Source of the DNA: Selaginella moellendorffii
Taxonomy: Eukaryota; Plantae; Lycopodiophyta
Assembly: GCF_000143415.4 (NCBI RefSeq)
Contig: NW_003314407.1
Location: 1-64,000, forward strand
Reading direction: 5' to 3'
DNA length: 64,000 nt
The stretch's first letter is position 1; every line of letters starts with the position of its first letter. Under the pieces are notes generated by a model that was not told the origin of the DNA, ran no database searches, and worked only from the letters and a program-made list of their open reading frames with translations. This document shows, piece after piece, positions 28,155 through 57,548 of this stretch. The position numbers were made by a program, and so were the translations under genes.

Positions 28155-29946
28155 TCAAAAGTTCCGAAGTGGAATGGTTATATCGATAGAAGTTGAAATT
28201 ACTCAAGAATAAGTAATGGGATTAAGATAGAGGAAGAGTCTCAAACAAGTTTAGCAAAAACTAAACCAATGAAAGGGAGAGAACCACCATAGGTGATTGA
28301 TTGAGTCTTTATGTTAGAGAGATTATGCTTCTTGGAGGATGGACAAGGCATGATGAGCCTTCGGTGTCAAACCATTAACAAATATTGGCTAGGTGTCAAG
28401 GATGGAAAGGGTAATACATGCTAGTATTACTTTATAAAATAATTTATCATTTGATGAGGATATTGAACTTCATTTATGGGTGGTGGAGTTGTGAGAAATA
28501 AATCTCTAAGCCCCAAAGTGGAGCCAAAAAAGTGCCACGTGGTAGTGGCTGAAGCGAGAGCCAAATAAGTGTAACATGTTTAGACTAAAAACTCCAACTT
28601 GAAAGGTCGAGAGTGGGAGTGGAACTCCCAACGAAGTGCTTAAGGAACAAGCATGAAGTGAGCAATAAGTGAGTCTCTAGAAAAGGGACACAATAGGACC
28701 AACACATGACATATGAAAGTGTCCGAGAAGGAGTCCGAAATAGACTCGAGATGGAGTCCGAGATGGACCCGAGATGGAGTCCAAGATGGAGTCCGAGATG
28801 GACCCGAGATGGAGTCCGAGATGGAGTCCGAGATGGACCCGAGATGGAGTCCGAGATGGAGTCCGAGATGGAACCGAGGCCGAGACCGAGACCGAGTCAG
28901 AGACTGAGTCCGAGTCCGAATCTAAGATTGAGACCGAGTTCAAGTCCAAGTCCGGGTCCGATCGTCCCCCAAGTGTGGGGGGGGGGGGGGGGGGGGTGTT
29001 GCAGGGGGTTCCAAAAAGTATAATAGAGAGAGTGTGGGGGTTGGACCCCAGTGGAGCCAATTTGGCCCAAGAAGGCCATGCCCAGCTGTTGGGTGATGAG
29101 ATAACCACTGGGAAGTCCAAAGCTAGAGTGAATACAGACTAATAAGCGGGGTAACTTGGTAAAGTGTTCAAGAGCCGGCTCTAGTTTTCCTAGGAGATCA
29201 AATGGTCGATGCTCCCAGTCCAAGCATGGGTGGCACTACCTATTTGGATACCTAGCGTGGCTTAATGGAACTTCACTCTAAGCCCATAGTTAGAACACCC
29301 AAAGGCAGAAGGTGGGAAGAGTACCCATGAGGCTTGCATAAGGCTATGATGTTCCAAAATATTATCCCAAAGTCCTAGACTATGGAAAGGAAGAGGAATG
29401 GTCCTCTGGTGTAGTGACCAAGGATACGGTTATGTGGTGAGGAAGTCCCAAAGGATAATGGGATTTAGTGGTTAGGCCTGTGGGCCTTGTTCTAGTAGCA
29501 GTGTTGGCGAACACGGCCATGGACAGAAAAGGGACTTGGTGAGGATTGTAAAAGGGATATTGGGGAAGGCTGTTCCCCATGTCTGTGGGCATCTTAAAGA
29601 TGCTAGGGAATGGATCTTGGATGGTCTCTCATGGACGAATGGCCCAGTCTTTGAGAGACGGGACTGTGATGCAAGTGGTGTTGAACCATTAGTGTGACCA
29701 AGGTGAATAGGCATGGCCTTAGCGTAACAGGCTAGTATGTCGGTGGTACCTTGGGGTGTTGATCATGGGACCGGACACATGGAGCACTTGGACCAAGTCC
29801 AAAGGTTGAGTGGCATAAATGCCATTCTCGGGGCTAGCAAGTCCTAAATCCTGAATTGGACTTATGGAGGTTGTGAATAAGACTCCTCCAAGTGGTCGAA
29901 AGTGTGGCTAATGGCTAAAGTAGAATGGAAAAATTAGTCACTTACA
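28155..29946 (+). mobile_element. Large-family 3' fragment: internal end + PPT + LTR (28490-29946), diverged
   Basis: Homologous to 10150-12564, with a shorter minisatellite. Confidence 0.88.
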
Positions 29947-32397
29947 CTCTCCTAGTTGTGGCGACTATGTACAAGCTTGTCATTGAGGCTACTCTTATGT
30001 TGGTTTTTTGCATTGTGCTCACAAGATTGATATCTCAATAATGGTATCCTGTGGTGTTGACCCCTTCATGATCTAAAAGTATCATATTGAGAATTTTGCC
30101 TACATCTTCTTTGTGTATATCAGATCAGAAGAGATCTCTTGCATTGCTTTTGTCAAGTGCTGCCTAGACATGACAATGAATTTGATTGTTGGATTTTTTG
30201 TTGTTTCTTTGCCTATCCTTTCGACAAATGTCCAACCATCCTTGTCCATAGTGATTGGGATTGCATCACCTAGATCTATTGAGTTCTTCTGTACAATCAT
30301 CAGCTCCTTGAGGGCATCGTGGATAAAGAGCTACATCAATGATGCACCAAGACATTAGGAGTTTGTAGATTGTTTGATCGTTGAAGTAGTAGTGCTTGTA
30401 CTTCAACAAGGGTGTCCTGTTGACACTGGTCTTTTTTTCCACCTCTATTGTTATAACTGTGTTGTCATCATTTCACCCTTTTGCTCCTCTCTTTGGAGCC
30501 TTCATTTCTACCATCTCTTGGTTTATTTATTGTGTGACACTTTCTTTTCTTGCTTTGTATGGAGGTTTTTGTCCCTAGCTCGTCCATGCATTATTGCTTG
30601 CAACCTTGCTCCAAAGTTCACATCTAACCCTCTTCTGTGGTGGTTCATCATCATCTTCTTCTTCTTTTCATGATGAGGAAGGACTCTTGTCTTGAATTTC
30701 ATCACTTGTCACTTTTTGTCTCACTATTATCCTCTTCATTATCATTGTGTTGTACTTTGTCTTCATCGTCCTCACTCTCCTAATCATTGGACATTGATGT
30801 TAATGAGGATGTATCACTTAATGTATGTTTATCATCAACAACCTGATTGACATTATGTCTATCATTTGGATTGTAGTTGGAGAGGTCATGGAATGGATGC
30901 TCCAATTCTTCTATTTCCCTCTGATAAAAAAGTCTCTCAATTAGAATCTTATTGTTGACTGTCCACAACAACAATGCCCTTGACAAGGTTAATCTGTCCT
31001 TGAGGATTCCATAAGCAGTGAAGGTTGTATCAATTCCTTCTCTGCAGACTATATTGTAGTTGACAGAATAAACTCTAAGTCTTGAACAATATTCCTGATG
31101 AATGTCTTTTGAAGCTCTGTATAAATGGCCCTCCTTCCCTGTTCATGTCTTTGTTAGGAATCTCTTCTTCTTTGATGACAATCCCATAGACTATTAGACT
31201 GTTTGGGTTGGTAAGATCCACCAACACTAGATCATCATCTTGTATCTCTAATGTCCACTTTTGTGGTTGTGTGGAGTTGCAGCCTCTTTTCACTCTGATG
31301 GACTCATGTAGAAGTGTTTTAGATTGCTAGGCCTGGAAACATGAAAGAACTTATTAGAATTACTTAAAATATTTTTGAAATGGGAGAGAATGGATCCTAG
31401 TGTGAGGCCTCATGCTAAGTGAAAGGGGAAATGGAAGTAATTCTATAGGAGGTTAATAGCATGAGAACTCAAGAATGGATGGGGTGTATGAAAGGGGTTT
31501 GAGGTTATTAGCATAAAGCCTCACACTTAGGAATGGATGGGGTGTGTTTGCCAATTCCTTGATAATAATATTACTTGTCCCATGGACAGATGTTCGAGCA
31601 AGATTACCATCAAGAAACTAGACAAACCAAAATATTTTTAGCACTTTAGCATAAGGCCTCATGCTAATCCTTAAGCATGAGTCCAGTCACAATGTGCTGA
31701 TGGAGATTACTAGCATGAGGCCTCACACTTAGATTGCTTGTGATATTTTTCCCAGTTTCTTAATGACAATCTTATTCACTTATGCAATAAACATGCATGC
31801 AAAGGAGATTGGTGTCGAGAAACTAGGCTAGAGGAGGTGGGTGGGCTTTTTTTCTTGGTGTGAGGCCTCACACTAATGTTTTTGTGTGAGGTTGGACACC
31901 ATCCATTTGTAGATTGGATTAAGGTATTATGGAGGGATGAAGTCATTTTCTTGGCATGAGGCCTCATGCTATTCATTTGTATGCATTTGTTTCTTACTAC
32001 TTTAGGTGTCTAGGTGAGTAATCTTACTCGCCAATTCATCTTTGGGGTAAATGTTCAAACAAGATTGCTCCCCAAACACTTGCAAGACTGGGGAAACAGT
32101 GGAAGGTTGTACGTTTAGATGTTTGCTTAGCCATTGCCATATTTGTAGTGTCATTTTTATTCCACTTTAAGGTTCACAAGTTACACACTTTATTTCTATT
32201 CCTATCTATAGTGCCTAAGGAAACTGTTTGAAGGCAGCTAGGAAAAGCTCTTTGCAATGCGTTGGCTCACTAGAATGAACAAACCAAGCTAGGGGATCCT
32301 AGAAGTGCTACCTTAGAAGGATGCCATCGAGAATTTCCCTAATCTCTCCCTTCTCTCTAATCTCGTGAGAGGCTAGCTTTGGTGTTGAGCGAAACTG

Positions 32398-32816
32398 ATG
32401 CTGTCCAAGTCCGAGTGTGTGGATCTCATCACTTCTGCGACCAATTCCTCACAGGCGATCGATGCCCATTCCCGGATCGAGATCGCCCAGAAGCAAATGC
32501 TGCCTGGCGATTGCTGCTACCTCTCCAATCTCGTCATCCTTCGGTATGGCAAGCTGGGCAAGATCCAGCGCGCGCGAGCAGTGTTTGACTCCATGGAGCG
32601 ATGCGATTGCCACTTGTGGGTCATTATGTTCTTGGCACACGCCCAAGAAGGGCATCTCGCCACTACCAAGGATCGAGGCAAGGTTACTGCTGCATGGTGG
32701 ATTGCTTGGGGCGAGCTGGGTATGTGGAAGAGGCCGAGGAACTTGTGAGGAGCATGCCTTACAAGCCAGTTTCAGTGGATTGGATGTGCTTGCTGGGAGC
32801 AAAGTCTAGAAATTGA
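32398..32816 (+). pseudogene. PPR fragment (copy B)
   Basis: Near-identical to 15185-15603. Confidence 0.8.
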
Positions 32817-33065
32817 GGACAAAGATCTCATGGTGTTGTGCTAGAACAAGCTTTAAGTGTAGATTCTAGGAATTCTACTAGCAAATAGTAGCAATTTTGT
32901 TTGAAACTAGTGTGAGTGTAGATTCTGTGTCCTCGTGATTAAAGAGGGTATTCTTTGACAGATCATCATGTATGATTAAAGAGAAAATTCTTTGCTCATT
33001 TCCAATGGTCGCTTGGTAAAGTACAGGAGCCAGCTTTTGGACTATATAAATTTAGGTTCTTGGAG

Positions 33066-34392
33066 GTCAGTGTCGCAGTGATGGCACAGGGCTGCGCGGC
33101 AATCTCCAGTGCAGGCGGCTATGGCAGGAGCTCAGCGGCTCGCTGGGCGACCTGGGCACATTCATCCCGATCGCCATGGCTGTAGCTCTCGTCAATGGCA
33201 TGGATCTTGGTCTCTCATTGCCACGGGCATCTACAACGTTCTCACCAGCGTGCTCTTTTGCGTGCCAATGCATGAAATCCATCGCGGCGGTGGCCTTCAC
33301 CGAATCCAAGCATCTCAGTGTGGATGAGATCATGGCCGCGGGGATCACTGTGTCTGCGATCGTGTTTGTGCTTGGAACCACGGGCTTGATCACGGGTCGT
33401 GGCTTGGATCGTGCCATTGCCGGTGGTTCGTGGCATCCAGCTTGCGCATGGGCTCTTTCGCGGTCAAGGCTGTCAAGTACGTGATGAAGGATCAAAATCT
33501 CTCTAGGGACAAGGCAATGGGTGATCGACCATGGCTGGGCTTGGATGGAATTCTCCTCGCAGTGATTTGCTTCACATTCATCGTGCTGGTGAATGGATCT
33601 GGCGAGGGCTACGAGTACTTCGTGACGAACAGTGAAGGTGATCGTCATCACGATGATCATGAAGAGCACCGTGAAGAACATCAAGCGAGATCGTCAAAGC
33701 TCGTGAAGTTTTTCCAGAGGATCCCGACTGCCTTGGCAGTGTTCGTGCTCGGGATCATCCTGGCGTTCGTGAGGAGGCCACACATTCTCAAGGAGCTCCA
33801 GTTTGGCCCGGCCGCGCCACGGATCACTCGAATCTCTTCCCACGACTGGAAGACGGTTTGTGAGAGCCGCCATCCCGCAGCTCCCTCTCACTATCCTCAA
33901 CTCGGTGGTGGCGGTTTGCAAGCTCTCGAGCGATCTCTTCCCGGCCAAGAAGGACTCCGTGACTCCGACCAAAGTCTCGGTGAGCGTGGGGCTCATGAAC
34001 TTGGTGGGCTGCTGGTTTGGAGCTCTCCCGGTTTGCCATGGCGCTGGAGGACTGGCCGGGCAGTATCGTTTCGGAGCCACGAGTGGGGTAGCGGTGGCAA
34101 GCTTGTGCTGGGGCTTCTCTTGGGGGGCTCACTGGTGAGAATTCTGCCAGCTTTTCCAGTGGGACTGCTGGGGATTTTGCTGCTCTTCTCCGGGGTGGAG
34201 CTGGCGATGGCGTGCCCGGATCAAACTAGTAGGAGGGACTTGTTTGTGATGCTCTGCTGCATTGCCATCTCGCAGGGATCCAATCTCGTGGTGGGATGTG
34301 TTTGTGCCATACTCTTGTATGTGCTGCTCCAGGCGAGAGAGATGGATTGTTGGGCGATTGCAAGCTCTTGGTTGCGAGGTTCCTCAATGTAA
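33066..34392 (+). pseudogene. MOT1-like pseudogene copy B (C-terminus present, start deleted, frameshifts)
   Basis: Same motifs as copy A plus FPVGLLGILLLFSGVELAMA C-terminus; stop at 34392. Confidence 0.88.
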
Positions 34393-36424: not shown

Positions 36425-39400
36425 TATAAACAATTAAATTTTTCATTTTACTTTAGTCACTTCACTACACGTTCGACCACATGGAGGAGTCTAACTCACA
36501 ATCTCCATAAGTCCTATTTCGGGCTTAAGGACTTGCTAGCCCTGAGAATGACATTTATGCCACTCAATCTTTACACTTAGTTTAAGTGCTCCACCTGTTT
36601 AATCCTATAACCAACACCCAAAGGGACCATCGATATATCAACACTGACATAGGATGTCTGGAGACATAGGGGACACCCTACCCCAATATCCTTTTTACTG
36701 TCCCCACCAAGTCCCTTTTATCCATGGTCGTACTCGTCAACACCACTACTGGGTCAAGGCCCAAAGGCTTGACCATTAAGTCCTATTATCCTCTAAGACT
36801 TCTTCACCATGTGACTGTATCCTTGGTCACTACACCAAAGGATTACTTTTCTTCCTTTCCACAGTTTGAGACTTTGGGATGACATTTTGAAACACTGTGG
36901 CCTTATGCGAGCCTTATGGGTACTCTCCCCACCTTCTGCATTTTGGTGCTCTAGCTATGGGTTTAGAGTGAGGTTCCATTAAGCCATGGTAGGTATCCAA
37001 GTAGGTAGTGCCACCCATGCTTGGACTGGGAGCATCGACCATTCAATCTCCCGGGGGAGCTAAAGCTAGCTCTTGAACATTTCATTAAACTACCCCACTT
37101 GTTGCGAATATGACTTCGGGTATCGAAAGTTACCTATCGGCTAGTCCTTTCAGATATTCTTTCCTTACTGCCACGATGGCAAGAGGTCAGTATTGCTGGA
37201 CCCATTATCAGTTTCCCACTTGAGCTAGTTGAGAAATTGGTCAATGACCATGCACTTAGATTGGATAAACATAAGGTAGGAATCCTATGTGTTTCTTGCT
37301 GAGCATACTCGGCTTGGTTTGAGAAACTTGTGTCATTGGCTTGCACTTGCTAGTATCAAGAACCCCCGCGATATTGAGATTGGTCCCTCAATATTCGCTA
37401 GATGATAGCTTACCGTGTCTGCCAAACACCCTCGCTATCATCTAGAGGTAGAGTTAACATGTCAACATGGAAACCCATATAAGTCTAACAACACGATCCT
37501 CCACAACATCATCTGGTAAAGCAAGCCTATCATTGCTAAATCTTCATTGAGTGAAGCAAGTGTCAACAGTTCTTGACAAAGTTTACAAGCAATCATTAGT
37601 CGCAAAGCAACCAACAATCACTCTTCAACTTGTCTTCACCAGACCTAACACTAAACTCATATCATCGAGTCATATACTCATCCATCATGAACGTAATACC
37701 CTAGTATAAGATAAAGGTTCATGGATAAGCATGAACTAAATGACCACTCAAATCCAACTCAACCACAATAAGCTCACTAATGCGTCTAGCCAATAGCTCT
37801 GAGCATGCCTTGAAGAGGTTAGCTATGCATGATCAACACTTAGTCGAAGCTAAAGTGAAGACCATGAGATGAACTCATATTGGTACACAACCTCCTCATA
37901 AACAAAGTTATAGTACGGGTACCAACATCTCAACTGCAAACAACTAAGTTGGATATCACCATCCTCAACCAAGGCGCAGGGCCACCAAAACCAAGTCAAG
38001 ATCAATGAGAGCTCACTACTCTCATAGAGTTTAACGAAATGCAAGGTGCAACTTGCTACCAAACATAATACTACAAAAGAAAGGCAGAAGGGTCACCCTT
38101 CTTAGAAAAGTGCAATGGTCACTTTTCTACACTAACTCCAGACTCTATCCAACTCAATTGCTTTAGCCTCAAAAGTCAGTATCCCTTTCGGGCCGCATTA
38201 TACAAACTATCTACTAAGATCTAAGCTAACCGAAGTCAACTCTAACCCTTTCACTAGTTTGTACTGGCTTATGAAAACGGAATGATTTTTGGACAAAGTG
38301 ATCAACAGATCAGCCATTGGAAAAGTCTAAGAAAATTTATGGAAAATTTTCCATCCTAGAGAAAGAATGACTCTCAATCCAAAAGTGAAAACTTCAAGAC
38401 TCAACCAACTTCCTCCTACTAACAAATTCATATAGGTTCACCTCAACACAAATTCTCATGACCCACAATATGTCTAAGCATCGAATATTTTTTTGCCCAT
38501 ACTTCCGACATCTAACACCAACATCTGCAAAGTGCAAAAGGAACATCCAAGGCTTGATCACGAAGACTACAACTTTGGACATCCATATTGCACTAACACT
38601 CTTTTTCAACCACCTTCAAGATCCAATGTGAAGCCCAAACACTAACAAGAAAAATGACATAGAAAATCAAGCTCTAAGAAAAATTCCTCATCAATCGAAT
38701 TAACAATGCCACTTCCACTAACATAAGTGCTAGCGATATCAATGCCTCAAACTTCACATCTTCTCAATCCAACAATCTACTCTAAATGTTAATGGATTCA
38801 TCAACAAGCTATAGCAAGCTATAGTGAATGCTACAACCCTTTTCCAACACTTTATGGGCAAACCCTCAAGGAAACAAGGTACCAACTTAAGCTTAGCATA
38901 ATGGACCACCATCGAGAATCCAATCAAAGCTACTACAATGCTACTACGTGCAAGTAGACTAGCTCCACTATCAACCACTTTGGGGTTGATCATTGTTTAA
39001 CCAAACAACTTCGTAAACACATTGCTCACTATCACATGGATATGATATAATAATCACAATGACTTGATCATCAATTGAGCAACACCACGAGCAATGCCCA
39101 TGTCATTATTTCAAAGGTTTATATGAGTATCAAATGTCAACTCGATTCAATAAAATGCAACATAAATGCCACACTCCACCGATAGAGATTTACAACACCC
39201 AACACCACTAACTTTTGTTCACAACACAGACAAGTTCATACCACTCTCTACTGACCAAACTCAATACTAATCCAACACCAAGCTACTTAAGGAGCAATAA
39301 CAAGGTTCCCTGGAAAAGAATTGAGCATTGCAACCCAAGTCTTCCAATAGCAAGCCTAGACAAAAAATGTATTGCACTTCACCGCTATCCATCCCACAAC

Positions 39401-41905
39401 TCACCATTGTAAGACCACCATCTCCAACATGCATCAAGATAGGGATTCTTGATTGCATGATGTGAACTAACACCTCGTTGTAGATCATTTCTCTAAGGAG
39501 AGAAAATGATTTACGTGTTTGATCCTTCGTCCCTGACAACTCTCTTTCTGGTCTCATCTTTGGCTAAACCACAAGCTTGCATTTGCATTGCCTTCAGTCC
39601 AATCCAAGAAAAGTTTATGAGAGAGCATGGCAATGACTACTTGAACCAATAGACTCATCCCTACAGTCTTAGTTGATCCACTTGTAATCATGCCTAGGAA
39701 GGATCCACTAGTGCCGTGCTAAACAGCTACGGACCAGCCTATTTGCTACTTATAGCAAACCCAAGGAAGGTTTACTTTCACCTATGGTACATGGAACAAC
39801 TCACAGAACCATTAGAACAACTCATGGAACCACCGATAGATTAACATTAATCCTACCAACTCGGAGTGTAACCTTGAGTTGCTAATGTGCCTCACTTACG
39901 AGCCCAAGCACAAATTTGTGCTAAATGGAACAACTCAATCCCATCCTATGAGCCCAAGAGCAAGCTCACATCATAAAGTACAACGAGGTAACCAAATCCA
40001 TACCTAAGGAACAATTGTGAAGCCTTTGCACCCAAATGTGTACCCACTTGGATCATCGTTTTCATCTCTGTGTATGCAATGAGACAAGTTGCCCAATCTC
40101 GTTGGATAGTACTTACCGAGACTTATTCCCTGATACCAAATGTAGTACACGTGGTTTTGACCCTTTATCCTATGGTGTTTTACCATAGGATAACACTGCG
40201 AAGCGAAACCTAAACCCTATTTATGCCATGTGACACATGCCACATGTCATATGCCACGTGTCCAAGGAACGTGGTGCCAAACCCGAGATTCAGGGCCTTG
40301 GGCCACTGAACGAAGGAATGGTGCCAAAACCCCCAAGCATGAAGCCAAGGAGTGATGGAATCGAACCACGGAGCAACTCTCGAGCATACAGCCCAAGGAG
40401 CGAAGGGATAGGAGCCTGGAGCGACTTGGAACAATTCTGGAGCAATCAGCATCTCAATGCTAGGACCAGTATGCAAAACAAAGCCAAACGGAGTCTAGCG
40501 CTATTTCGGCATACCGGTGGCTTAATGCAAGGACATGAGTACTCCCCCAGTTAATATGGAATGGAACTTGGGCTTAGACCCAAGCCGGACGCAGAACAAG
40601 GACAAGCACGCAAGCGAGAGCTAGACTATGCCTTAAGTTGGTCGGCCATGCCCGACCTACCCACTATCCCTACTATACATTTAGAACCCCCCACAACCCC
40701 CCTTCCCCCCCCCCCCCCCCTGAGGAACACACGCTTTGGGCTTTCACCCCAAGCCTCCCTTAGTATTAGGAGTTAGTCTCTAGGACAAGGCTTGAACACA
40801 ATGGTGTTCGTCCCATGTCCAAATTCACAATCTAGGGACATTCTATATTTAGTAAGTTTCGATCTCTACATTCCGTAGATATACCAAATGAACAAATCTG
40901 GACACTTTCCATAAATAGCATTTGGGACCAAAATGAGACTAATACAAAGGGCATGATAGTGAGGGTGTTTGGCAGACACGGTAAGCTATCATATAGCGAA
41001 TATTGAGGGATCAATCTCAATATCACAGGGGTTTTTGATACTAGCAAGTGCAAGCCAATGACACAAGTTTATCAAACCAGGCTAAGTATGCTCAGCAAGA
41101 AACACATAAAGTTCCTACCTTATGTTTATCCAATCTAAGTGCATGGTCATTGACCAGTTTCTCAATTAGCTCGAAGTCACATTTGCGACATCACTTGTCT
41201 ATCTGTATTTAATTTAGCCTTGGATTCTTCAATAGTTATATCATCATCTAACACGTGGGTATAGCCTTTCTTGGTCACACTAGCCTTTCTTGGCCAAACT
41301 GGCTCTACTAGAGTCTTCCCTCTACTATACTTTTGGAGCTCACCTAGGGTTTGGGAGACAAACACTTTGGGCTTTCACCCTCGAACTCGGACTTCGACTT
41401 GGACTCAGACTCAAACTTAGACTCAGATTGGGACTTAGACTCGGACTTGAAATTGGTCTCGGTCTTAGACTCGGGCTTGGTCTCAGTCTCAGACTTAGAC
41501 TCGGTCTCGATTTCGGTCTCCCCCTCATGTCTATCTCAAACTCCATCTCAAGTCCATCTCGAACTCCATCTCAGGTCTATCATTGACTCGAACTCGGACT
41601 CAGACTCGGACTCGGACTCAAACTCGGACTCGGTCTTAGTCTCGGTCCTGGTCTCCCCCTAAGGTCCATCTCAAACTCCATGTGTCATGTGTTTAAAGTG
41701 GAGCCAAAAGGGTGCCATATGGTAGTGGCCGAAGTAGAACCCCAAACGAGTATAACATGTTTGGATTAAAAGCTCTAACTTAGATAGTCAAGAGTGGGAG
41801 TGGAACTCCTAACAAAGTGCTCAAAAAACAAGCACGAAGCAAGCAGTAAATGAGTCTTTAGAAAAGGGACACAAGAGGACCAGGCTGAGGGATTTGTGTC
41901 TCACA
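36425..41905 (-). mobile_element. Diverged solo LTR of large family, interrupted by 37100-41190
   Basis: Reverse-complement LTR sequence continues across the insert (TACCCCACT|..|TCACTTGTC) and ends GTCTCACA at 41905. Confidence 0.8.
37100..41190 (-). mobile_element. Second-family decayed Gypsy-like LTR element with inverted ends
   Basis: Minus-strand LTR 41190-40141, PBS TGGTATCA ~40138-40131, decayed pol; 37100-37441 is an inverted copy of 40953-41190; TSD CCACT/TCACT. Confidence 0.8.
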
Positions 41906-42099
41906 CCTACAACTCCTTTATGATCTCAAAATCTCTATGTTTCCCATTATTATATTTCCCACTCTTATTAGCCTCTTTTTATCCACCACATTGCATACAT
42001 GTTCATATACAAACTCAAGTGGAGAGTCATGCCTTCTTGACATGCTACTTCTCAAGGATAGACTCAATCTTGGGACCTTCCGATGCTGATATCAAGTGG

Positions 42100-44182
42100 T
42101 GATATATTTAACCACCAATAAGAGTCAGAATAAAGAACAACTCCGATACCAAGTTGTAAACAACTAAATTTTCCATTATACTTTAGCAACTTAACTATAT
42201 AATTAACCACTTAGAGCAGAGCCTCCATAAGTCCTATTCTCGACTTCAGGGACATGCTAATCCCATGAATAGCATCTATGCCACTCCGCCCTTGCACTTG
42301 GTCTAAGTGCTTTATGTTTCCAATCCTATAATAAACACCCAAAGGTACCATTGATATATTAACCTATTATATTAAAGCTATATCCATTCACTTTTGTTCC
42401 ATAGGTAGTCCAAGACCACCTGTACCATAGTTTAGTCTCCTAAAGACTGGGCCATCTATCCATGAGTGGACATCCCATGATCACACCTTGGCATTCTTAA
42501 GATGCCTAGAGACATAAGGAACACCTTTCCCCAACATCCCTTCTTCGGTCCCTACTAAATCTCTTTCGATCTATGGCCATACTTATGAACACCACCATTG
42601 GGTCAAGGGTTGAAGGCCTGACCACTAAGCCCTATTGACCTTTAGGACTTTCTTGCCATGTGACCATATCCTTGGTCACTACACAAAAGGATTGCTCTTC
42701 TTCTTTTCCACAATTCAAGACTTTAGAATGATTTATCGAAACACCACAACTTAATGCAAGCTTTATAGGTAATCTCCCCACTTTCCACCTCAGGGTGCTT
42801 TAGCCATGTGGCTAAAGCGAGGTTCCAAAGAACCATACTAGATATCCAAGTAGGGAGTGCCACCCACACTTGGATTGGGAGCATCCAACCATTTGATCTC
42901 TCAGGGGAGTTAAAATTAGCTCTTGAACACTTTACTAAGTTACCCCACTTGTCCATTTGTGTTTATTCTAGCCTTGAACTCTTTAGTAGTTCTATCATCA
43001 CTCATCACGTGGGTATAGCCTTCCTTGTTCACATTGAACTTTCCTGCCCAAACTTGTTCCACTAGAGTCCTCCCCCCTACTATATGTAAGCGACTAAATT
43101 TTCCATTCCACTTTAGTCATTAACCACACCTCCAACTATTTGGAGGAGCTCACTCACAACCTCCATAAGTCTTATTCCGGACTTAGGGCTTGCTAGCGCC
43201 GAGAATGACATCCTTACTACTCAACCTTTGCACTTAGTCCAAGTGCTCCACGTGTTCAATCCCATGACTAACACTCAAAAGTACCACTGACATATCAGCC
43301 CATTACGCTAAGGCCATGCTCTATCACCTTTGCCGCACTGGTGGTCCAATACCACATGGATCACAGTCCTATCTCTCCAAGACTAGGCCATTCGTTCATG
43401 AGTGGTCATCCCAGATCCACTCCTTAGCATCCTTAGGATGTCCACAAATATGGGGAACAACTTTCCTTAATATCCATTTTTCAGTCCCTACCAAGTCCCT
43501 TTCTGTCCATGGTTATATTCGTCAACACTGCCACTAGAACAAGGCCCACAAGCCCGACCTCTAAGTCCCACTATCCTTTGGGACTTCCTCACCATGTGAC
43601 CATATCCTTAGTCACTGCACTAGAGGACTGCTCCTCTTCCTTTTCATAATCTGGGACTTTGGGACAACATTTCAGAACACCGTGGCCTTATGCGAGCCTC
43701 ATGGGTACTCTCCCCACCTTCCACATTTTGGTGCTATAGCTATGGGCTTAGAGTGAGGTTCCATTGAGCCATGCTAGGTATCCAAGTAGGTAGTGCCACC
43801 CACACTTGAACTAGGAGCATCGGCCATTCAATCTCCTGGGGGAACTAAAGCTAGCTCTTGAACACTTCACTAAGCTACCCCGCTTGTCAATTCATATTCA
43901 CTCTAGCCTTGGACTTCCCAGTGGTTATCCCATCACCCAACATTTGAGCATAGCCTTCCTGGGCCAAACTGGCCTTTCCTGGCGAAACTGGCTCCATAGA
44001 GTCCTCCCCCTACTTCAAAATGTTGAAGAAGTGCAACATTTTTTTCAGAGTTTCACTCTTGCTCTCAACTTTTCAAGTCAAAGATTTTAGTCCAAACATG
44101 TTATGTTTGTTGAACTTCTTCAACCACTACCATATAGCATTCTTTTGGCTCCATTTTGGGGCTTAGAAATTCATGTCTCACA
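42100..44182 (-). mobile_element. Two nested/adjacent diverged large-family LTRs (~42153-43084 with PBS; 43085-44182)
   Basis: CTCCGATACCA (reverse PBS) near 42140-42150; LTR termini TGTAAGCG at 43085 and GTCTCACA at 44182. Confidence 0.8.
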
Positions 44183-44383: not shown

Positions 44384-44656
44384 TGTAAGCTTTTAAGATT
44401 GAGTTTAGACTTCTTGAGAAGTCACCCAAACTGGAATTGCTAAATGTCAATCAACATATGGTGCGATTCCCCTAGCCAACCAATAGAGTCAAACTTGAGA
44501 CCCTCTCTAATACCAAATGTAAACTTATAAGTTTGGACTTCCCGAAATGTCACCCAACCCAATACTATTTAAACCCAAGGACACTTAACCCCAAATATTT
44601 CAATACCCTTAACTTACTTTTATTCATAAGCCTTTTTCCTTTATATTTAAATCCCA
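44384..44656 (-). mobile_element. Decayed Cassandra TRIM fragments
   Basis: Reverse complement of the Cassandra LTR/5S region, PBS and internal start. Confidence 0.75.
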
Positions 44657-45245
44657 TATAAGCAACCAAAAGGAACAATTTGAAAGATAATCTATAGGGT
44701 TCAAATATAGAAGAAAAATGCCTATGAATAATAGTACACCCCCTTTTCCAATCGGTTAAAGGTCTTGAGATATTTTGGGTTAAGTGTCCTTCGGTTTAAA
44801 TAATACTATGTTAGATGACCTTTCAGGAAGTCTAAATTTAGAAGCTTACATTTGGTATTAAAGAGGGTCTCCAATCTGACTTTATTGGTTGGATAAAGGA
44901 ATTGCACCATATATTGATTGACATCTGGCAGATCCACTTTGCTTCGGCTAAGCTCGACCCTAGGGGTAGGGTGTCAAGAGAACGGGGCTCTTAGAAGAGT
45001 TGTGGCTCTCAACTTTTGTTCATGAGGGTGTGAACTTGCAAGAAAGCATAATGGATTATAAGCAACCAAAGGGAACAACTTGAGAGATGATCCATAGGGT
45101 TTAAATATAAACAAAAAGGGCCTATGAATAAGAGTGCACTCTTTTTTTCAATCGATTAAAGGTTTTGGGATATTTAGGGTTAAGTGTCCTTAGATTTGAA
45201 TAATACTGAGTTGGGTGACCTCCTGGGAAATCTAAATTCAAATTG
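44657..45245 (+). mobile_element. Decayed Cassandra TRIM (LTR 44657-44850, internal, LTR from 45057)
   Basis: Colinear with 59834-60426, with many C>T/G>A changes. Confidence 0.85.
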
Positions 45246-46999
45246 TTGTCCTCAAGTTGTTCTCTTTAATTCTTTACAATTTTTTGTCACTACATTAATT
45301 GTGAATGTTTTCCCCTATCCTTCACATTGGCTTGTAAGAAAAGCTCTAGTCCTTCACTATAGTGTCAAGAGTGACATTGGAATGCCTTCTAGATGGACCA
45401 TTACCTAGCAAATAAGTGCTGGATTAGCTGCTTGCAGCAAATGCCTAGATAAGGCAATTGTTGTGGACTATGGAGCTTGGCTCACCCAAGTGCTAGAGCA
45501 ATATAGTGCTTAATATTTGTGTATCCACTATCTCTTGCATACTCTACTGAAATCTCTTAACAAGTTGAGGAAGGGCTAGTACATACCCACACTAGTAACA
45601 ACTGAGAAAGAAGCACTTTAGCTAGCAAGTGCCCTCTCAATGCCTAAATGATGTGCAAAAGCCATAGAATATTTCCTTATGGGCATAGGAAGATGGTGGA
45701 GGAATGACATTATAGCTTGGACTTGGCCTACCACTCAATCTAGTGTGTAACATTTGCCCCATCACAATCTTGCCATTGGGAAATCATGAAGATTTTGGTC
45801 CAATAGTAGGGGATAAGGATGGCTAAACCCAGGAAAAGAGGGGGCACTTGGCAGTGGTGACACAGCTATTGGCACTAAAGAAGTGGCACAAATGAGAAAT
45901 GAGATTGGGCCTATTCCAAGGTAGCATGAAGTTATAGGGCTTTTTGTGTATTAATTGCAAACTTGTTCAAGAAATCTAGTGGTAGAAATCTTGCCAAAGA
46001 CACTAATTTTTTGTATTTTTTTCTTTAATTAAAAGTGTAGAGATTTAAGCATATTCAAAGCTTAAAGATAACTCTATTTATTAAGCTTGATTTTTCACTT
46101 ATAAAAAGACCAACTCTCACTACACAAGTAATAGAGTGTTAACCATTTCTTCACAAACTCCCAATTCTTTTTTTGAGTTAAACTAAACTTAAAGTTTGGC
46201 TAACCAACTAATCCTTAAAGTTTTTAAGGTATAACAAAACTTGTTCTAAATCCTAAATCTTGGGGTGTATATAATAGTTCAAGACCTCAAAGGGAAACAC
46301 TATAGTTTAAATATTCGATATAAGTACCCTAACTCCCCACTTCCATCCCAAAGGGAAGGCTTAAGCTTTTAGGAAGGGGCAAGGACCAATGAACCTTATA
46401 GGACTCAAGTGGGGCACCATTTTATTTAAGATGAAAGTATTGTAGTCAGTTTCTCTTCCAAGAGTGGGTATTGCTCTTCTCTGACACCCCTTAAATATAT
46501 GCTCACTCACCTAAAGCTATTAACCCCTAGCCCTAACCTTAACATAATTTAAAAGCACCTCTAAAGAGTTCCTTCAAGAGTGGGTCTTTATCTTCATTCT
46601 CCTTCTTATACTTTTGGAACCCTTTGCAATTACTAGACACTTATTCATGCCACAATCACTAAAAAAGGTTTGAATCTTGAGCCAATCCACCAAGAAAGTC
46701 TTATTTGGAGTGAGCTTTGAGTGCCTTAACATACCCACATGGTAACTGTCATAATATGCATCTCTTTTTGCATTTCTTGCTAATTTGATTGAGGGTTTGC
46801 AGCTTATGAACAACATTATAGATAGTCAAAACCTTTATGACTCTATTGGCAATATTATCGGCACCACCATCGATAATAAGATTCTAATGTTCCTCTTGGT
46901 CAACCATCACAATTAACTTCTCTAATACTAATATTACAATCTGGTGATAAAAGATAAAAAAAGTATAGCAACTATGCTACACCTTTTCTTGAAATTCCC

Positions 47000-49900
47000 C
47001 TAACCAAGTTCCTATACTTTAATATATGGTCAAAGATGGTGCTTAATAGGCCACAACTTTGGCAAACAAAAGGGCATTAGGGGTAGCTTGAGCTCTCACA
47101 TGTGGTGTAATGACAATGGAATAAAATGGAGTCAAGATTTTATACTTGACATAAGGCCTCAATAAATGGCCCTAACCACTCACTTGATTGCATCACTATC
47201 ATCTACTAGTTAGATTTGGAAGGTACTTTTGTCTCAAAAGAGCAGCACTCTGCCCCTTAGATATAAATTAGCAATATACAAAACTGTTTGGTGTCTATGG
47301 TTTCCTTGTTAGTCACATCAGTACTTTAGAGGAATTTATATGTATAAACGTTTCAAAGTTCTTTTTTGTAACTACAGGTATGTTTTGGCATTTTCAATAC
47401 TTTGCAAATATACTTGCTACCATTAGTGTGGCTGATATGCTGCTATGGGTTTGACAAACATTCTTATATGCAATCTCTAGTGTGGTAGCTAGTAGCAGTG
47501 CATTTGCAGGCAAGAGGGCTAGGATTTCCATGGATCAGTTGTCTTGCCACTGCCGCCACAGTTGCCCTATCAAGGAATCTCTCCAGCTCATGATGAGGGA
47601 GGAGGGATTGGAGCTCTACGAGGACATGATCCTTGGGCAGATGTATTACAAGAGTAAGATGTTTATATTCATCTAATAATGAACAGGAGGCCATGTCCAC
47701 AACCGCCGATGGCACAAAATCCTTGTCTAGACAATCCACAGATGCTGGAACAACATGCTTGTCAGAATCATGAGAAGAGAGTGAAGAAGGAAGAAGATCT
47801 TGAGAAAGGGTATTAACATCAGCCATAGAACTTCCCGGGGGATGAATAACACTAAAATCATATATCTGAAGTGTAACCAACCAAAGGGAACGATTCGAGA
47901 GACGATCCATAGGGGTTCAAATATAGAGGGAAAGGGCCCATGAACAAGAGTGCACCCCCTTTTCCAATCGGTTAAGGGTCTTGGGATACTTGGGGTTAAG
48001 CGTCCTTGGGTTTGAATAGTACTGGGCTGGGTGACCTCCTGGGAAGTCCAAACTCAGGAGCTTACAATTTGGTATTGGAGCTGTTCCTTAGTCCGACTTT
48101 TATTGGTGCTCAAGTATATCACCATTGATGTTGGCATCGGAAGGTCCTAGGAGTGGGCCTATCCTGGAGGAGTAGCATGTCGAGAGGACATGGCTCTCCA
48201 CTCAAGTTCATGCGTGAACTTGGGCACAATGTGGTGGATAGAAAAGGGCCAATAATGGAACGACTTTGGGATCTTGGGAACAGTATAAGGTCTCCTCAGA
48301 GAGCTGAGGATGTTATCCAAATGAGCGTTGGAAACGGGCTAACGTAGTTGTGATAAACAACTATAGTTGGGATCACGGGAAAGATGTAGACTCCAAAACA
48401 ATAAAGAAGTCACAAGATTATCCTCATATACTTGAGGTTGGTGCTCATGAATGTGAGACCAGAGGTAATGACCGTGGGAGGTCAAATACGGAAGAGGACT
48501 CAAGTCCTTGAAATGGTAGCCGGGGCTACCTTTAATAAATGCTGGAACAACCCAAGGAGTTGGGGGGTGTACTTAGAGATGAGTTGGTATTCTCATCACA
48601 TGGACAAGTAGTCCTAAGGGGCAAAGGTTGCCCCCAGGGAACAAAATCAAGTGTCAGAGTAACACTTGTGAAAATAGTCCTTTTAAGTAGGACAAGAATG
48701 CAGGAAGTGTATTCCAGTGAGCTAGTGCCTCACAAGTAGGACCTTATAGGTCTGTGGATTAACCAAGTCCAAAACTGCTGGATGACTCAAGTAGAGTCAA
48801 GGGATGGTCCTAAAAGGACTGATGGAAGCATTTGGACTGCGGTGTGTTGTACCCCACGAAGGATGGGGGGGGGATCATAGGATCCAAGGATGAGAACAGA
48901 GGGTATCTCATCGATGGCAAAATGTGCCATGCTAAAGTCGTGGGAAAGGTGTTCCCAAAAAGAAAACAACTTTGACACAAAGTTGTGTGTGACCTCTATG
49001 GTGCAGTGCTAACGGATGGTTGGCATGAGAAAGAGTGGTATTGGTCTTGGCAAAGACTTAGACACAAAGAAGAAATGTCATAGAGGTAGGCTCGTGGAGC
49101 TGATGGTGTGGAGACACCAAATGTGCCAAGGTGTGATACCTTAAGGCTATGTTGGTGGGTTCATGAGAACCCCTTGCCAATAGAAATGGGAATGGCATAG
49201 CCTAAGCTGCAGAGCATGCAATTGGAGTGTGGTGACCCAAATAATGATGGAGGTGTGGAAGCACCAGCAATGAGTTGTAGGACTTAACAACTACGAGGCA
49301 ACTAAGCAAGAGGTGCAAAATAATTGGTTAAATGGGTAGAAAGTAGCTACCCAAGCCTTCTTAATGGCATAGGGAAGTGGATATACTCTTACGGGGGATA
49401 AGTTGCTTATGTTGCGATATAGTAAGTCAATGTCATAAAAGGAAATACTCATTGTCAAGGAAGCCGTCATTTGGACACCCGAACACTTTAGAACACCAGG
49501 AGGTGGTGTTTGATGTCGCGAGGGCAGTAGATAAGGCCCAAGGGACTAAGTCCCTAGCGAATGATGGATAGAAGGTGCTATCCAAATGTCCAAGGTGGCG
49601 GAGACAGGAGAAGACTATCTACTCGAATTGGACAAAGCCAAAAATGGAATTTTGGCAAGGCTAGCGATGGGCATGCAAAGGCCCGTAAGCAACAACGTAA
49701 TCCCGTTGTGTGGGATTATAGGGTGAGCATACCTGGATTGAGGAACCACTCCCTAGGCTATCGGGTAGGTTCATCCCTAAGAATACTTGCTAAGGCATGA
49801 TAGAAAGTGCAAAGCTATCTTCCTGGTCTGGAGGAAAATGACCGAAGGAAAGGTGTGAAGCCAAAAGCAAGGAAGTAAGGGGATAGAACCGAACCATAGG

Positions 49901-52900
49901 AACCGAAGGGCATAACCAATGTTGGTTATGCTAGCTGGGAGTGGAGAATCAAGTGGGGGCTCGAGGGTGTTGCTGCTAGCAACCGTGATGCCATGGAGAG
50001 TCTAAAATATGGAATTGTCCATGTTAGACTGTATGGTAATTGAAAAGCTTGCAAAAAGAGAGGCCTTAGCAAGCTAAGGGATAGAGTTCCTTCAAGGTTC
50101 CCAAAGAAGATTCTAGGTAGCTTAGTACCTAGAAAGGCCAAGCATAAATGGTTCAAGGAACGCGCGAAATTAGAGTGGCGCAGCAGAAGTGTGGTCTTGA
50201 AGCTTGCCATGAGGCAAGGCTATCAAGGTTAGGGAAGTAGTTCTCGAGTGTTCAAAGAGAGGGCTTTGAACGAAAGTCGATGATCAAGGGCTTTCACGCT
50301 TGTGCAGGAACCATGTTACAGTGGTCGGAGGACTTGCCAAAGCGAGATTGGCAAATCAAGGGAACAAATACCCTAGTTGAAGGTGATAACTTCAAAAAGG
50401 GTGGGCCATGGGGCCAAGCATGGAGGAGTCCATGCATGATCACAAGCTTGTCAAGTGAGAGGACTTGGCAGTGGGGAGGAATTAGGTTCCTAAGCTGTGA
50501 TCAATAGCACGCTTTGAGTATAAGTTGGTGCACCGGCGTGGGGAGTCACGCCAGGCATCCTGGGTGATGCCGTCCGTAGATGCATATACGGAGGTTGGGT
50601 TCGAGTCCCAACCCTCTAGTGCTTGGGTTCGAGTCCCAAACCACTAGGGCGTGGTGATGATTTGGAATATGAGGACACTCATATTTTGGTGGTCATGGAC
50701 TCTCAGTGTGGAGACTGGTTTGGGCACACCGCCAAGCGAGGGATGCCTCGGAGTCGTGATGCACGGTTAGATTGCTTAGTGTGAAAGCTCGGCATATCTA
50801 ACTTGAACGCTTTGGTGCAAGTGGCACCAAGGACGTGGTGAGTGAGATGGGGACACCTAATCTCAGTTGCTATGAACCCTTGGCCGTAAGGGCTGGCTTG
50901 GGTGCACCGCCAAGTGTGGGGGATGCCCCCGGGGTTATAGTCAACAATTTGAAGGTCTAGAAGACCAAGTACCTCTTGGCAACTCTGTTAAGGTGCCAAG
51001 GTGAGATCACTAGGTGATCGTATGGCCAAATAAGAACAAGGTCCTTGGTTGGCTAAGGAATGAAGTTCTTGGTTCAAAAATGTTGAAATTGAACTGTTTA
51101 AGGTGGTGTGGCTTGGTCATGATGACCAAGTGGGAAGAGCACCTAAGTGAAATAAACTATGTTCGTGCGATGGCATAGTGAGTCCAAGGAAAGTAGTCTC
51201 TATAAGAGACCCATGGGAGGGTCACGAAGTTGGGCCGTGGATAGAGCCCATAGCAGGAGATGCTAAAGAGACGTACTAGGGGCGAACATCCTCCGGACTT
51301 GGCAAAGAAGAGTCTTTGCTATGGAACCGAAAGGATACCTCAAAAATGGAGGTAGCGATCCTATGTTGCTGGGTGTAACAATCAAGGATAGGAGCAAAGG
51401 ACTAGTGGCCAAATTTGGGCCATGGAATTTAATGGAAGGGATCCAAATGGCAAAGTTAGCCAAGGAACACTAATGTGTTTGATGCTAACGGGATGTGGGA
51501 AAGGAAGTGGACTTCCAAGGATGGATTCCTAAGTGCTCCAATTTGGCGAAGTAAAAGCTCATGGTGAGGGAGCGGCAAAGTAGCCAAAAAGATAGGGCCA
51601 TGGACAACCCTAGCACACAATATAATAACTGGAACTCAGTGCCCAAAGGTGGCATGAAATCGAACAGAGGATGATGGTGCCCTCAAGTGGAGAACTTCCT
51701 AGGATGAGGAAGTGGAGTTGCACAATATGTACAATGCAAGGTGTCGGAGACACCTAGGAAATTGATTTCGAGAAGTCAGAATTAAAAGTTCCAAAGTGCA
51801 AGGATTATAGCGCTGGAAAGTGAGACCACTTGAGAACGTGTAGTGGGATCGCGTTAGAGAAGGTGTCTCTAACAGGTTTAATGAGAACTAAACCAATAAA
51901 AGGAGAGAACCACCACAAGTGGTCAAATGAGCCTCTAAGTTGGAGAGGCTATGCTCCTTAGAGGATGGACAAGGCATGGTGAGCCTTTAGTGTCAAACCA
52001 TAGACCGATATTGGTTGGGTGCCAAGGATGGAAATGGTAACACATGCGGGTGTTACTTTATGAAAGGGTTTACCGTTCGATGAGGACATCGAACTTTGTC
52101 TATGGGTGGTGGAGTTGTGAGACACAAAATCCCTAGGCCCCAAAGTAGAGCCGGAGGGGTGCCACGTGGTAGTGGCTGAAGCGAAAGACAAACGAGCGTA
52201 ACACGTTTGGACTAAAAGCTCCGCCTTGAAAGGTCGAGAGCGGGAGTGGAACCCCTAACAAAGTGCTTGAGGAATGAGCACAAAGCGAGCCATAAGTGAG
52301 GCTCCAAAAAGGGACCCAAAAAGGACTAACACATGACACGTGGAAGTGTCCGAGATGGACCCGAGTTGGAGTCCGAAGTGGAGTCCGAGAAGGACCCCGA
52401 GATGGAGTCCGAGGTGGAGTCCGAGGTGGACCCGAGATGGATCCAAGATTGAGTCCGAGACGGACCCGAGATGGAGTCCGAGATGGACCTGAAATGGAGT
52501 CCGAGATGGACCCGAGATGGACCCGAGATGGAGTCCGAGATGGACCCGAGATAGACCCGAGATGGAGTCCGAGATGGACCCGAGATGGAGTCTGAGATGG
52601 AGTCCAAGATGGACTCGAGATGGAGTCTGAGATGGAGTCCGAGATGGACCCGAGATGGAGTCCGAAGTCGAGACCGAGACCGGGACCAAGACCGGGACCG
52701 AGACTGAGACCGAGATTGGGACCGAGACCAAGACCGAGGCCGAGGCCGAGACCGAGCCCGAGTCCGAGTCCGAGTCCGAGTCTGAGTCCGAGTCCGAGTC
52801 CGAGTCCGAGTCCGAGTCCGAGTCCGAGTCCGAGTCCGAGTCCGAGTCCGAGTCCGAGTCTGAGAGGGTGAAAGCCCAAAGCGTTCGTCTCCGAGACCCT

Positions 52901-55900
52901 GGGGGGTTTGGTGAGCTCCAAAAGTATAGTAGGGGGAGGACTGCAGTGGAGCCAGTTTGGCCAGGAAAGGCCAGTTTGGCCCAGGAAGGCCGGACCCAGT
53001 GTTGGGTGATGAGCTGCCCACTGGGAAGTCCAAGACTAGAGTGAACACGGACCGACAAACGGGGTAGCTTGGTGAAGTGTTCAAGAGCCGGCTCTAGTTC
53101 CCCCGGGAGATCGACTGGCCGATGCTCCCAGTCCAAGTGTGGGTGGCACTACCTACTTGGATACCTGTCGTGGCTCAATGGAACCTCGCTCTAAGCCCAT
53201 GGCTAGAGCACCTAAAAGCGAAAGGCGGGGAGAGTACCCAGGTGGCTCGCGTAAGGCCATGGTGTTTCGAAATGTTGTCCCAAAGGCCCAGACTGTGGAA
53301 AGGAAGAGGAGCAATCCTCTGGGGTAGTGACCAAGGACACAGTCGTGTGGTGAGGAAGTCCCAGAGGACCATGGGACTTAGTGGTCGAGCCTGTGGGCCT
53401 CGATCCAGTGGCAGTGTCGGCAAACACGGCCAGGGGCAGAAAGGGACTTAGTGGGGACTGACAGAGGGATATTGGGGAAGGGTATTCCCCTTGTCGGTGG
53501 GCATCCTAAGGATGCTAAAGAGTGGATCTGAGATGACCACTCACGGATGGGTTACCTAGTCTTGGAGAGCCAAGACTGGGATGCAAGTGGTATTGGACTA
53601 CCAGTGTGGCAAAGGTGATTGGGCATGGCCTTAGCGTAACAGGCTGCTATGTCGGTGGTACCTTTGAGTGTCGGTCGTGGGATCGGACACGTGGAGCACT
53701 TGGACCAAGTGCAAATGTTGAGTGGCATGGATGCCATTCTCGGGGCTAGCAAGTCCCAAGTCCTGAATTGGACTTATGGAGGTTGTGATTGAGACTCCTC
53801 CAAGTGGTCGGAGGTGTGGTTAAGTGACTAAAGTAGAATGGAAAATTTAGTCGCTTACAATTTGGTATCAGAGCCCAGTACTATTCAAACCCAAGGACGC
53901 TTAACCCCAAATATCCCAAGACTCTTAACCGATTGGAAAAAGGGGTGCACTCTTGTTCATGGGCCCTTTCCCTCTATATTTGAACCCCATGGATCGTCTT
54001 TCAAGTCGTTCCCTTTGGTTCCTTACATGAAGCTTCAAGGCCCACTAAACAGTGCGACCAACCAGGTTCTTCCTCTTTAATAATGAAGTAACGGCAGCAT
54101 GATCACCTTTTAGTAATGTTTTGAGAACCATGTAAATATGCATGAAGTTTTTAAAAACCCTAGATTGCTACTAAACACTCTTTCTTTATCGTGGAGTAGT
54201 TCACCTCCGTTGGTTGTAATGTATAGCTTATATATGCAATAGAATGGCACTAACCTGGGCTCTCTTGCATCAACACTCCTCAAAGACCAATATGAGAAGC
54301 ATTCACACGCAAAATGAAAGGTCAAGTGTGGTCAAGATATGCCAAAATTGGAGGAGTCATTAATAGCTTTTTGAGATCCAAAAATTCCTATTCATAATTC
54401 GGAGACCAGATGAAAGATGATATTGATGACTTCAGCAATGTTTGCAACAGTGTAGTGCAATAAAAAATATGATTCACAAAATGACCGAGATATTGCACCT
54501 TACCTAGGAAGCGCTGCACATCATTCACACACTTTAGAGTAGAGAACTTTAAAATACCCACAAGTTTGTCAGGATCAACTTGCAAATCCTCACGAGAAAT
54601 ACGGTACCCAAGATAAGTCATGTTCTTGAACCTAAATATGCACTTCAACTGCTTCAAGTAGAGGGACAAAAAAGTACGGAAGTGAGAGGAATCTATGAAA
54701 TATAAGGAAGTATGAGACAAGGGGGAGAAGCCTCAAAGTCACATTTCGTATAATTGCACTGCAACCAATCCATACTAAGGATGAAGTCAAAAGCTTGACT
54801 CGGCACCACCTGCAATGACTGCAACCCAAGCTCAAGATTGCCTACATGCACAATTAAGTCCACCTCATCCCATGCACATGCATGTGTATGGCCATTGCCA
54901 TAAAGAATGAAAATTGGCTCTGTTGCAAAATGTAAGTGTAAACAGCCACGTATGGTAATAAGTTGAGCAATAGAAGATAAATCAAGGGCCATCTAAGTCA
55001 GTGATGCAATTTGGTGTTTGTTTCCAAAGCCTTTTGCTTTGTGTGGAACTAGATATATCAAAGAGGATCAAGCTAGGAATGTTGTAGCCAGCACTTTGTC
55101 AAGATCTTGTTAGACTTGTGCATGTACTTACTCTAGCTACTCTTGACAATGCTCTTTGTTTGGCACAATGTTATGACATGTCGCCTCTCGCTGCACGTCC
55201 TTCAGCTCCACTTTTTATGGGTGATGGTTTTATTCTAATGGAGATTGATGCTAGTGCTACTCAAGTCCAAGGACAAAGGCGAGGACGTGGTCATGGCGTG
55301 ATGTTCACTGCTGGGCATATGATGAAGTTGGTCACACTTATCGGCATTGTCAATGTTTTCCAGATTGGCAGCCTCCATTTCCTGGGTGGAGACCTTGGCG
55401 TCAATAATGTCCTATTGGTGCTATTGCAGTGAAAGGTTTGGACACCGAGATGCATTCGGGAAACAAGGAGTCACACAAGTAATTGAGGGACCTTGCGCGA
55501 ATAAGCCAGTGACCCTTCCATTTTTCTTTCGAGAGTATCATAAAAGGGTTCACTCAGCACCAGTTCATCTAATATTTACTTTTTAAGCTTGTTTTTATAA
55601 CAAGAAGTCTTCTATTATTCTCTCCATATTGGTTGATATAAATTCGAGTGGAGATGATGCAATTGTTGGAAGGCGTCATCACAATTGTCAACATATCCGA
55701 ATGTGCGTTTGAAAACGTCTAGGAGAACACTCCAATTCCCACGAATGGTTGCACTTAAACCATTGTACCATTGCAGTGCCATCCCTTGGAGACATACAAG
55801 AAACTCACGCTAATGTCGAGCATCATCCCAAGAATGATATGTGGTAATCACCGTGAAGTGATCAAACCAATGGTATACATCATTCCTAGGATTCCCACGA

Positions 55901-57129: not shown

Positions 57130-57548
57130 ATGCTGTCCAAGTCCGAGTGTGTGGATCTCATCACTTCCGCAACCAATTCCTTGCAGGCAATCGATGCCCA
57201 TTCCCAGATTGAGATCACCCAAAAGCAAATGCTGCCTGGCAATTGCTGCTACCTCTCCAATCTCGTTATCATTTGGTATGGCAAGCTGGGCAAGATCCAG
57301 CACGCGCGAGCAGTGTTTGACTCCATGGAGCAATGCGATTGCCACTTGTGGGTCATTATGTTCTTGGCACACGCCCAAGAAGGGCATTTCGCCACTACCA
57401 AGGATCGAGGCAAGGTTACTGCTGCATGGTGGATTGCTTGGGGCGAGCTGGGTGTGTGGAAGAGGCCGAGGAACTTGTGAGGAGCATGCCTTATAAGCCA
57501 GTTTTAGTGGATTGGATGTGCTTGCTGGGAGCAAAGTCTAGAAATTGA
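57130..57548 (+). pseudogene. PPR fragment (copy C)
   Basis: Diverged copy of 15185-15603. Confidence 0.8.

Follow-up and report, generated by a model that had tools for sequence, protein, structure and literature searches.

A nested retrotransposon insertion with U3 starts at both ends in Selaginella moellendorffii, probably integrated as aberrant linear cDNA

We analysed a 64,000-nucleotide stretch of the Selaginella moellendorffii genome (contig NW_003314407.1, positions 1 to 64,000), here called the window, which is crowded with nested LTR retrotransposons. Our subject is a single insertion of ~4.1 kb at positions 37100–41190. It is nested in a long terminal repeat (LTR) belonging to a retrotransposon family with large LTRs, referred to as the large-LTR family. 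The insertion has one complete LTR, a primer-binding site (PBS) and an interior lacking detectable genes, all in minus orientation. At the far end of the interior, where a second direct LTR would be expected, the beginning of the LTR is found again but backwards. Both outer tips are the start of the unique 3′ (U3) part of the LTR, in inverted orientation. Most probably, this structure arose when an aberrant linear cDNA was integrated in one step. Coordinates are collected in Table 1.

The insertion site can be read from other copies of the host LTR. In an alignment of the flanks, the site is uninterrupted in 7 of 7 paralogous copies and reads ...CTACCC C[A/G]CT TGTC.... Apart from the insertion itself, the interrupted copy is exactly 5 bases longer, carrying CCACT to the left of the insertion and TCACT to its right, and its flanks re-join exactly. 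The variable base of this target-site duplication (TSD) is C in the paralogs. Hence, the T in TCACT is a later transition. A 7-bp TSD is possible on paper. It was rejected because it would break the register of the inverted ends. Conversely, a 5-bp TSD with TG..CA tips keeps this register and is the consistent reading.

The two ends of the insertion are inverted copies of each other, although of unequal length (342 nt on the left versus 238 nt on the right). A repeat search and self-blastn both identified one strong inverted pair in the element. This pair comprises 37222–37441 and the reverse complement of 40953–41172, with 93% identity over 220 nt. The outermost 19 nt of the left arm pair with 41172–41190 at 84%. 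In a pairwise alignment, the first ~19–25 nt common to both arms are TGTTGCGAATATGACTTCG and TGTCGCAAATGTGACTTCG. The tips read TGTTGCG... and ...GCGACA, the arms align from base 1, and both 3′ ends of the insertion are ...CA. The right arm has a gap of 101–104 nt, depending on gap placement, bounded by ACTTCG and ACTTG. Such a gap, with its ACTT microhomology, appears typical of illegitimate deletion. Elsewhere, 18 of ~241 aligned nt differ between the arms (7.5%), comprising 16 transitions and 2 transversions. At many of these positions, one arm has CG or CNG where the other has TG/CA or TA. This pattern fits two initially identical sequences that have long been decaying in place. We detected no further internal repeat of the arms in the element.

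The right arm is the beginning of a 1050-nt unit. Read on the minus strand, this unit ends at 40141 with ...GTGTACTACA. A 2-nt spacer (TT) follows, and then TGGTATCAGGGA at 40138–40127. The latter resembles TGGTATCAGAGC, which we take to be the plant initiator-Met PBS. For comparison, the large-LTR family includes a proven LTR pair at 4469–6433 and 10576–12570 (98% identical by blastn). Its layout is ...GCGTACA, ATT and TGGTATCGGAGC, with the PBS at 6431–6442, a polypurine tract (PPT)-like GGGTGGTGGAGT before the 3′ LTR and the TSD GTATG. We compared the element with the rest of the window by blastn and by nhmmer, with profiles built from non-coding sequence of the large-LTR family (LTR and interior). 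A ~180-nt LTR block is conserved (blastn E 1e-8; nhmmer E 6e-8 to 7e-4). A second, weak block is colinear with the first (nhmmer E 0.009). The PBS layout and the same-strand, colinear blocks are like those of the large-LTR family. Hence, 41190–40141 is a minus-strand LTR, of which the left arm repeats the first ~340 nt in reverse. The arm lies upstream of the conserved block, which occupies LTR positions 397–573, the U3/R boundary being inferred.

Table 1. Features of the insertion and its host LTR (window coordinates)
Feature	Position	Strand	Remarks
Host LTR, left part	36427–37094	-	Large-LTR family; blastn to 5623–6421, 11760–12558 and other copies; alignment with 7 paralogs
TSD, left copy (CCACT)	37095–37099		Site present once in paralogous host LTRs
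Left inverted arm, LTR positions 1 to ~340 (U3 start)	37100–37441	+	Outward-facing; backwards relative to element sense strand
Hairpin, 12-bp perfect stem, 24-nt loop	37398–37445 (37398–37409 / 37434–37445)		Spans breakpoint; DNA fold -8.5 kcal/mol
Internal region, 2.7 kb	37442–40126	-	No detectable coding capacity; no PPT at 3′ junction
PBS, TGGTATCAGGGA, initiator-Met tRNA type	40127–40138	-	10/12 match to TGGTATCAGAGC
5′ LTR, 1050 nt	40141–41190	-	TGTCGC... to ...ACTACA
LTR block common to large-LTR family (GGGTGAAAGCCCAAAGCG, G-run, GTATAGTAGGG)	40618–40794	-	Same strand, same order; blastn and nhmmer
Right arm, first 238 nt of 5′ LTR	40953–41190	-	Lacks 101–104 nt present in left arm
TSD, right copy (TCACT)	41191–41195		One C>T change; paralog alignment
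Host LTR, right part	41196–41880	-	blastn 41194–41631 vs 5184–5627; paralog alignment

The conserved block and the host LTR are both parts of wider patterns in the window. The combination of GGGTGAAAGCCCAAAGCG, G-run and GTATAGTAGGG within 40618–40794 recurs at 5434–5502, 11560–11650, 28887–29088, 52866–52934 and 61789–61857. It is common to the LTRs of two otherwise unrelated non-autonomous families, perhaps as a promoter that both use or as a signal to the machinery mobilising them. Around the insertion, three partial LTR copies of the large-LTR family adjoin one another in the same orientation and are 72–83% alike (36427–37099/41196–41880, 41965–43084 and 43085–44014). They form a tandem or repeatedly recombined LTR cluster. 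Arrays of 6-nt-based repeats (GACTCG/GACTTA type) lie within LTRs of this family, at 41379–41667 in the host LTR and at 4695–5436, 10802–11560, 52348–52868 and 61384–61781. The arrays give rise to long spurious open reading frames (ORFs) on both strands.

No coding capacity was detected in the interior. We searched Pfam (E ≤ 1) with 30 stop-free pieces from both strands. These were all interior sense-strand pieces of at least 31 amino acids, the longest opposite-strand pieces and pieces of the LTR. None had a match, and no transposase or DDE signal was present among them. Similarly, tblastn of the long ORFs of the window against the element returned noise only; the queries included a reverse transcriptase-like ORF and a retroviral SH3-like integrase tail. 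Rfam and tRNA scans had no match within the element, and the tRNA scan found no tRNA gene in the window. A word search of a large protein collection for other copies of the family, with a 105-aa ORF from the LTR, gave an uninformative blank; non-coding plant repeats would hardly be expected in such collections. Sensitive blastn and nhmmer identified no relatives of the interior elsewhere in the window, and the whole element matches only the ~180-nt LTR block. Within the interior, composition does not switch between strands, as it might at the border of a second, opposite element. A purine-run scan found no PPT at the inner junction (37441/37442).

The element thus has some hallmarks of an LTR retrotransposon and lacks others. 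TG...CA termini, a 5-bp TSD (4–6 bp being expected) and a PBS 2 nt after the 5′ LTR are present. Two direct LTRs, a PPT upstream of the 3′ LTR and gag/pol genes, the last expected of autonomous elements only, are absent. There is one full LTR, and the second LTR piece is inverted and 342 nt long. By its anatomy, the element looks like a non-autonomous LTR retrotransposon resembling large retrotransposon derivatives (LARDs). It shares with LARDs the long LTR, the PBS of iMet type and an interior that is several kb long and non-coding. LARDs, however, have two direct LTRs and a PPT, and the spikemoss copy has neither a 3′ LTR nor a PPT. A preliminary description of the locus had proposed much of this structure. 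It listed the inverted arms, the TG..CA ends with a 5-bp TSD in a host LTR that re-joins, and a minus-strand LTR of ~1050 bp with a PBS, all of which are borne out. It also listed a decayed pol, for which the Pfam and tblastn searches offer no support.

The inner end of the backward arm coincides with a hairpin. Homology between the arms ends at 37441, inside the hairpin stem, and the last 4 bases of the stem (CTAG) lie beyond the homology. At the homologous site in the 5′ LTR, only a 7-bp stem can form (-4.1 kcal/mol). The hairpin at the break belongs to the longest class of perfect stem in the element, which contains ~5 separate hairpins with perfect stems of at least 8 bp. We roughly estimate the chance of a random break at such a hairpin as ~1%. 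No microhomology is visible between the inner junction and the 5′ LTR copy, and no tRNA-like footprint was evident by eye at the junction. The position of the hairpin leans towards a polymerase event, such as a template switch, as the origin of the break.

A single integration event through two U3-type ends accounts for the precise 5-bp duplication, for the tips (TG..CA) and for the anatomy of LTR and PBS. Read in element orientation (minus), the integrated product is a complete 5′ LTR, the PBS and ~2.7 kb of interior, followed at the far end by ~340 nt from the start of U3, in reverse. It lacks a PPT and a 3′ R-U5 segment (the repeat and unique 5′ parts of the LTR). We consider it likely that integrase inserted this LARD-like copy in a single step, as an aberrant linear cDNA whose two tips were both the start of U3 (LTR position 1, TG...). 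LTR base 1 is free as a DNA end only on PPT-primed plus-strand DNA. Hence, the backward arm is best read as plus-strand strong-stop DNA left unfinished after ~340 nt.

Two routes could lead to such a product. In the first, the strong-stop fragment would prime on a plus-sense template, at an internal site, inside the particle. The strand would then take the normal path, through the PBS and the second jump to completion of the 5′ LTR. In the second, the growing plus strand would switch late onto the strong-stop fragment and run to the 5′ end of that fragment. A break at a hairpin would fit a pause or a snap-back switch. Briefly, the nascent 3′ end would snap back on ATGATAGC, copy four bases and move on, and this would give exactly the observed CTAG extension. 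Integrase would then accept the two U3 ends of the duplex.

Several observations weigh against this interpretation. The PBS matches at only 10 of 12 positions. Homology between the LTR and those of the large-LTR family is weak, with E between 6e-8 and 9e-3. The interior has a T-rich sense strand, an unusual composition for the sense strand of a retroelement. The coincidence of break and hairpin was noticed post hoc, after the data had been seen. Furthermore, the window contains a single copy of the family, which does not by itself show how a canonical member is built, where U3 meets R, what the parental sequence was at the breakpoint, or which arm is ancestral for the 101–104-nt indel. Finally, the sequence does not separate a template switch by reverse transcriptase from end joining of cDNA pieces, or from integration of U3 ends from two donors followed by repair, and both of these are possible. 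Overall, the interpretation in the preliminary description is supported, with a caveat on the aberrant reverse-transcription route that it proposed. Two U3 tips were integrated once; that reverse transcriptase made the error is not evident from the sequence.

Two copies of one family could instead have inserted separately, in opposite orientations. A later deletion would then have joined LTR position 340 of one copy to the interior of the other. Many insertions in the window are indeed nested or clustered, and the head-to-head Cassandra LTRs at 44427–44941 are probably opposite insertions close together. Illegitimate deletions also occur, as illustrated by the 101–104-nt indel with its ACTT microhomology. 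However, there is one 5-bp duplication only. The second copy must have targeted the same five bases, and the deletion must have removed the middle duplicate. A TSD or PPT context belonging to the left arm itself had been named beforehand as evidence for two opposite insertions. We found no third copy of the TSD, no trace of lost host sequence and no purine run at the inner junction. We consider this history unlikely.

Short TSDs, TG..CA tips, long inverted ends and an absence of retroelement genes are also compatible with a cut-and-paste DNA transposon. Such an element, either of the Ginger/GingerRoot type or derived from it and non-autonomous, would have long terminal inverted repeats (TIRs) that merely look like the start of an LTR. 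Integrase-related GingerRoot exists in Selaginella lepidophylla (PMC6839031). Like the spikemoss insertion, Ginger and GingerRoot elements have inverted ends with a short TSD, and Ginger elements also have TG..CA tips. GingerRoot makes a 6-bp TSD (rarely 7–8) and has mostly TA...TA tips, TIRs of 100–150 bp and, in autonomous copies, a DDE transposase (PMC6839031). The TSD is 4 bp for Ginger1 and 6 bp for Ginger2 (PMC6839031). None of these lengths equals the 5 bp found here. Neither Ginger nor GingerRoot has a PBS or an LTR body. Conversely, the spikemoss copy has both, and its arms are 342 and 238 nt. Its right arm runs into the 1050-nt unit, which ends ...TACA and is followed by the tRNA-iMet-type PBS. 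The same unit has blocks in common with a proven LTR family, and the Pfam scan gave no transposase signal. Hence a DNA transposon is, in our judgement, quite improbable.

Rearrangement after a normal insertion is also conceivable. Here, an element with direct LTRs would have had its 3′ LTR replaced or inverted by inversion, gene conversion or template-switching break repair. Break-induced template switching can produce inverted duplications, and hairpins such as that at the breakpoint are fragile in chromosomal DNA too. Yet the backward arm terminates, on its outer side, exactly at LTR base 1, next to the TSD. There is no reason for a chromosomal break to fall at this base, and no remnant of U5 or a PPT is present. 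This explanation is highly improbable. DIRS elements, retroelements with inverted terminal repeats, have no TSD and possess an internal complementary region and a tyrosine recombinase. The spikemoss copy is excluded from this group by its 5-bp TSD; it also has TG..CA tips and a tRNA-type PBS, no coding signal in Pfam and no further internal repeat of the arms.

Integration of an aberrant cDNA through two U3 ends has a counterpart among retroviruses. In 1988, Colicelli and Goff (J Virol 62:633) reportedly described a Moloney murine leukaemia virus provirus with inverted LTRs that had integrated through two U3 sequences. As in that case, the spikemoss copy reflects one integration event, with LTR sequences facing each other and a U3 tip at both ends. 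The mouse virus was an exogenous mammalian retrovirus in culture, whereas the spikemoss copy is an old, gene-less plant retrotransposon nested in another LTR. Of its 1050-nt LTR, only the first ~340 nt form the backward piece. Hence, two-U3 integration is already known from a mouse retrovirus. What is particular here is the partial-U3 arm, the derivation of body and arm from one family, and the hairpin at the break.

A second insertion in the window, at 47872–54027, has the same architecture in a different family, as had been claimed earlier. Its inverted arms are of Cassandra type (157 nt, 94%), with tips TGTAAC... and ...TTACA and a perfect 5-bp TSD, TGAAG. Its interior is from the large-LTR family. 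Like the insertion at 37100–41190, it has one 5-bp TSD and inverted TG..CA arms that derive from the start of an LTR. Unlike this chimera, the 37100–41190 copy has arm and body from one family and no tRNA footprint at its junction. No similarity between the two elements was found by blastn. Since family and TSD both differ, we regard the two insertions as independent.

Other repeats lie nearby. The 515-nt segment at 44427–44941 matches its own reverse complement at 75% and is made up of two pieces of Cassandra-type LTR placed head to head. The U3 starts face inward, with ~45 AT-rich bases between them, so that the geometry is opposite to that of 37100–41190. Probably, these are two close insertions. 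A Cassandra copy sits beside them at 44657–45240, with a weak 5S match at 45152–45247. Further away, 13330–16905 and 30532–34110 form a 3.6-kb direct repeat (96%), 17 kb apart. The pair encloses an F-box ORF (18180–18962) and a Copia-type integrase tail (21374–22204). Part of the repeat is found again at 56943–58565 (91%). Very long LTRs or a segmental duplication could account for these repeats.

Without a PPT and a 3′ R, the 37100–41190 copy could not undergo renewed reverse transcription and was dead on arrival. We infer that it is a dead-end replication accident that has since decayed in place. As a single, old and dead copy, it is a further example and not a new principle. A broader speculation is that the Selaginella machinery makes and integrates two-U3-ended cDNAs unusually often, given two unrelated cases in 64 kb, and that insertions with TG..CA inverted ends might be mobile again, as DNA, through integrase. 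We think this very doubtful. If true, such re-mobile insertions would be a living picture of the origin of DNA transposons of the Ginger/GingerRoot type. Copies with two U3 ends escape LTR finders that rely on direct repeats and can be mis-annotated as TIR transposons. The two unrelated cases in one 64-kb window suggest that their rate in the Selaginella moellendorffii genome is worth measuring. The insertion described here is a clean fossil. It indicates that two like (U3) ends are usable by the integrase of a plant retrotransposon, and that a backward arm can be derived from unfinished plus-strand DNA.

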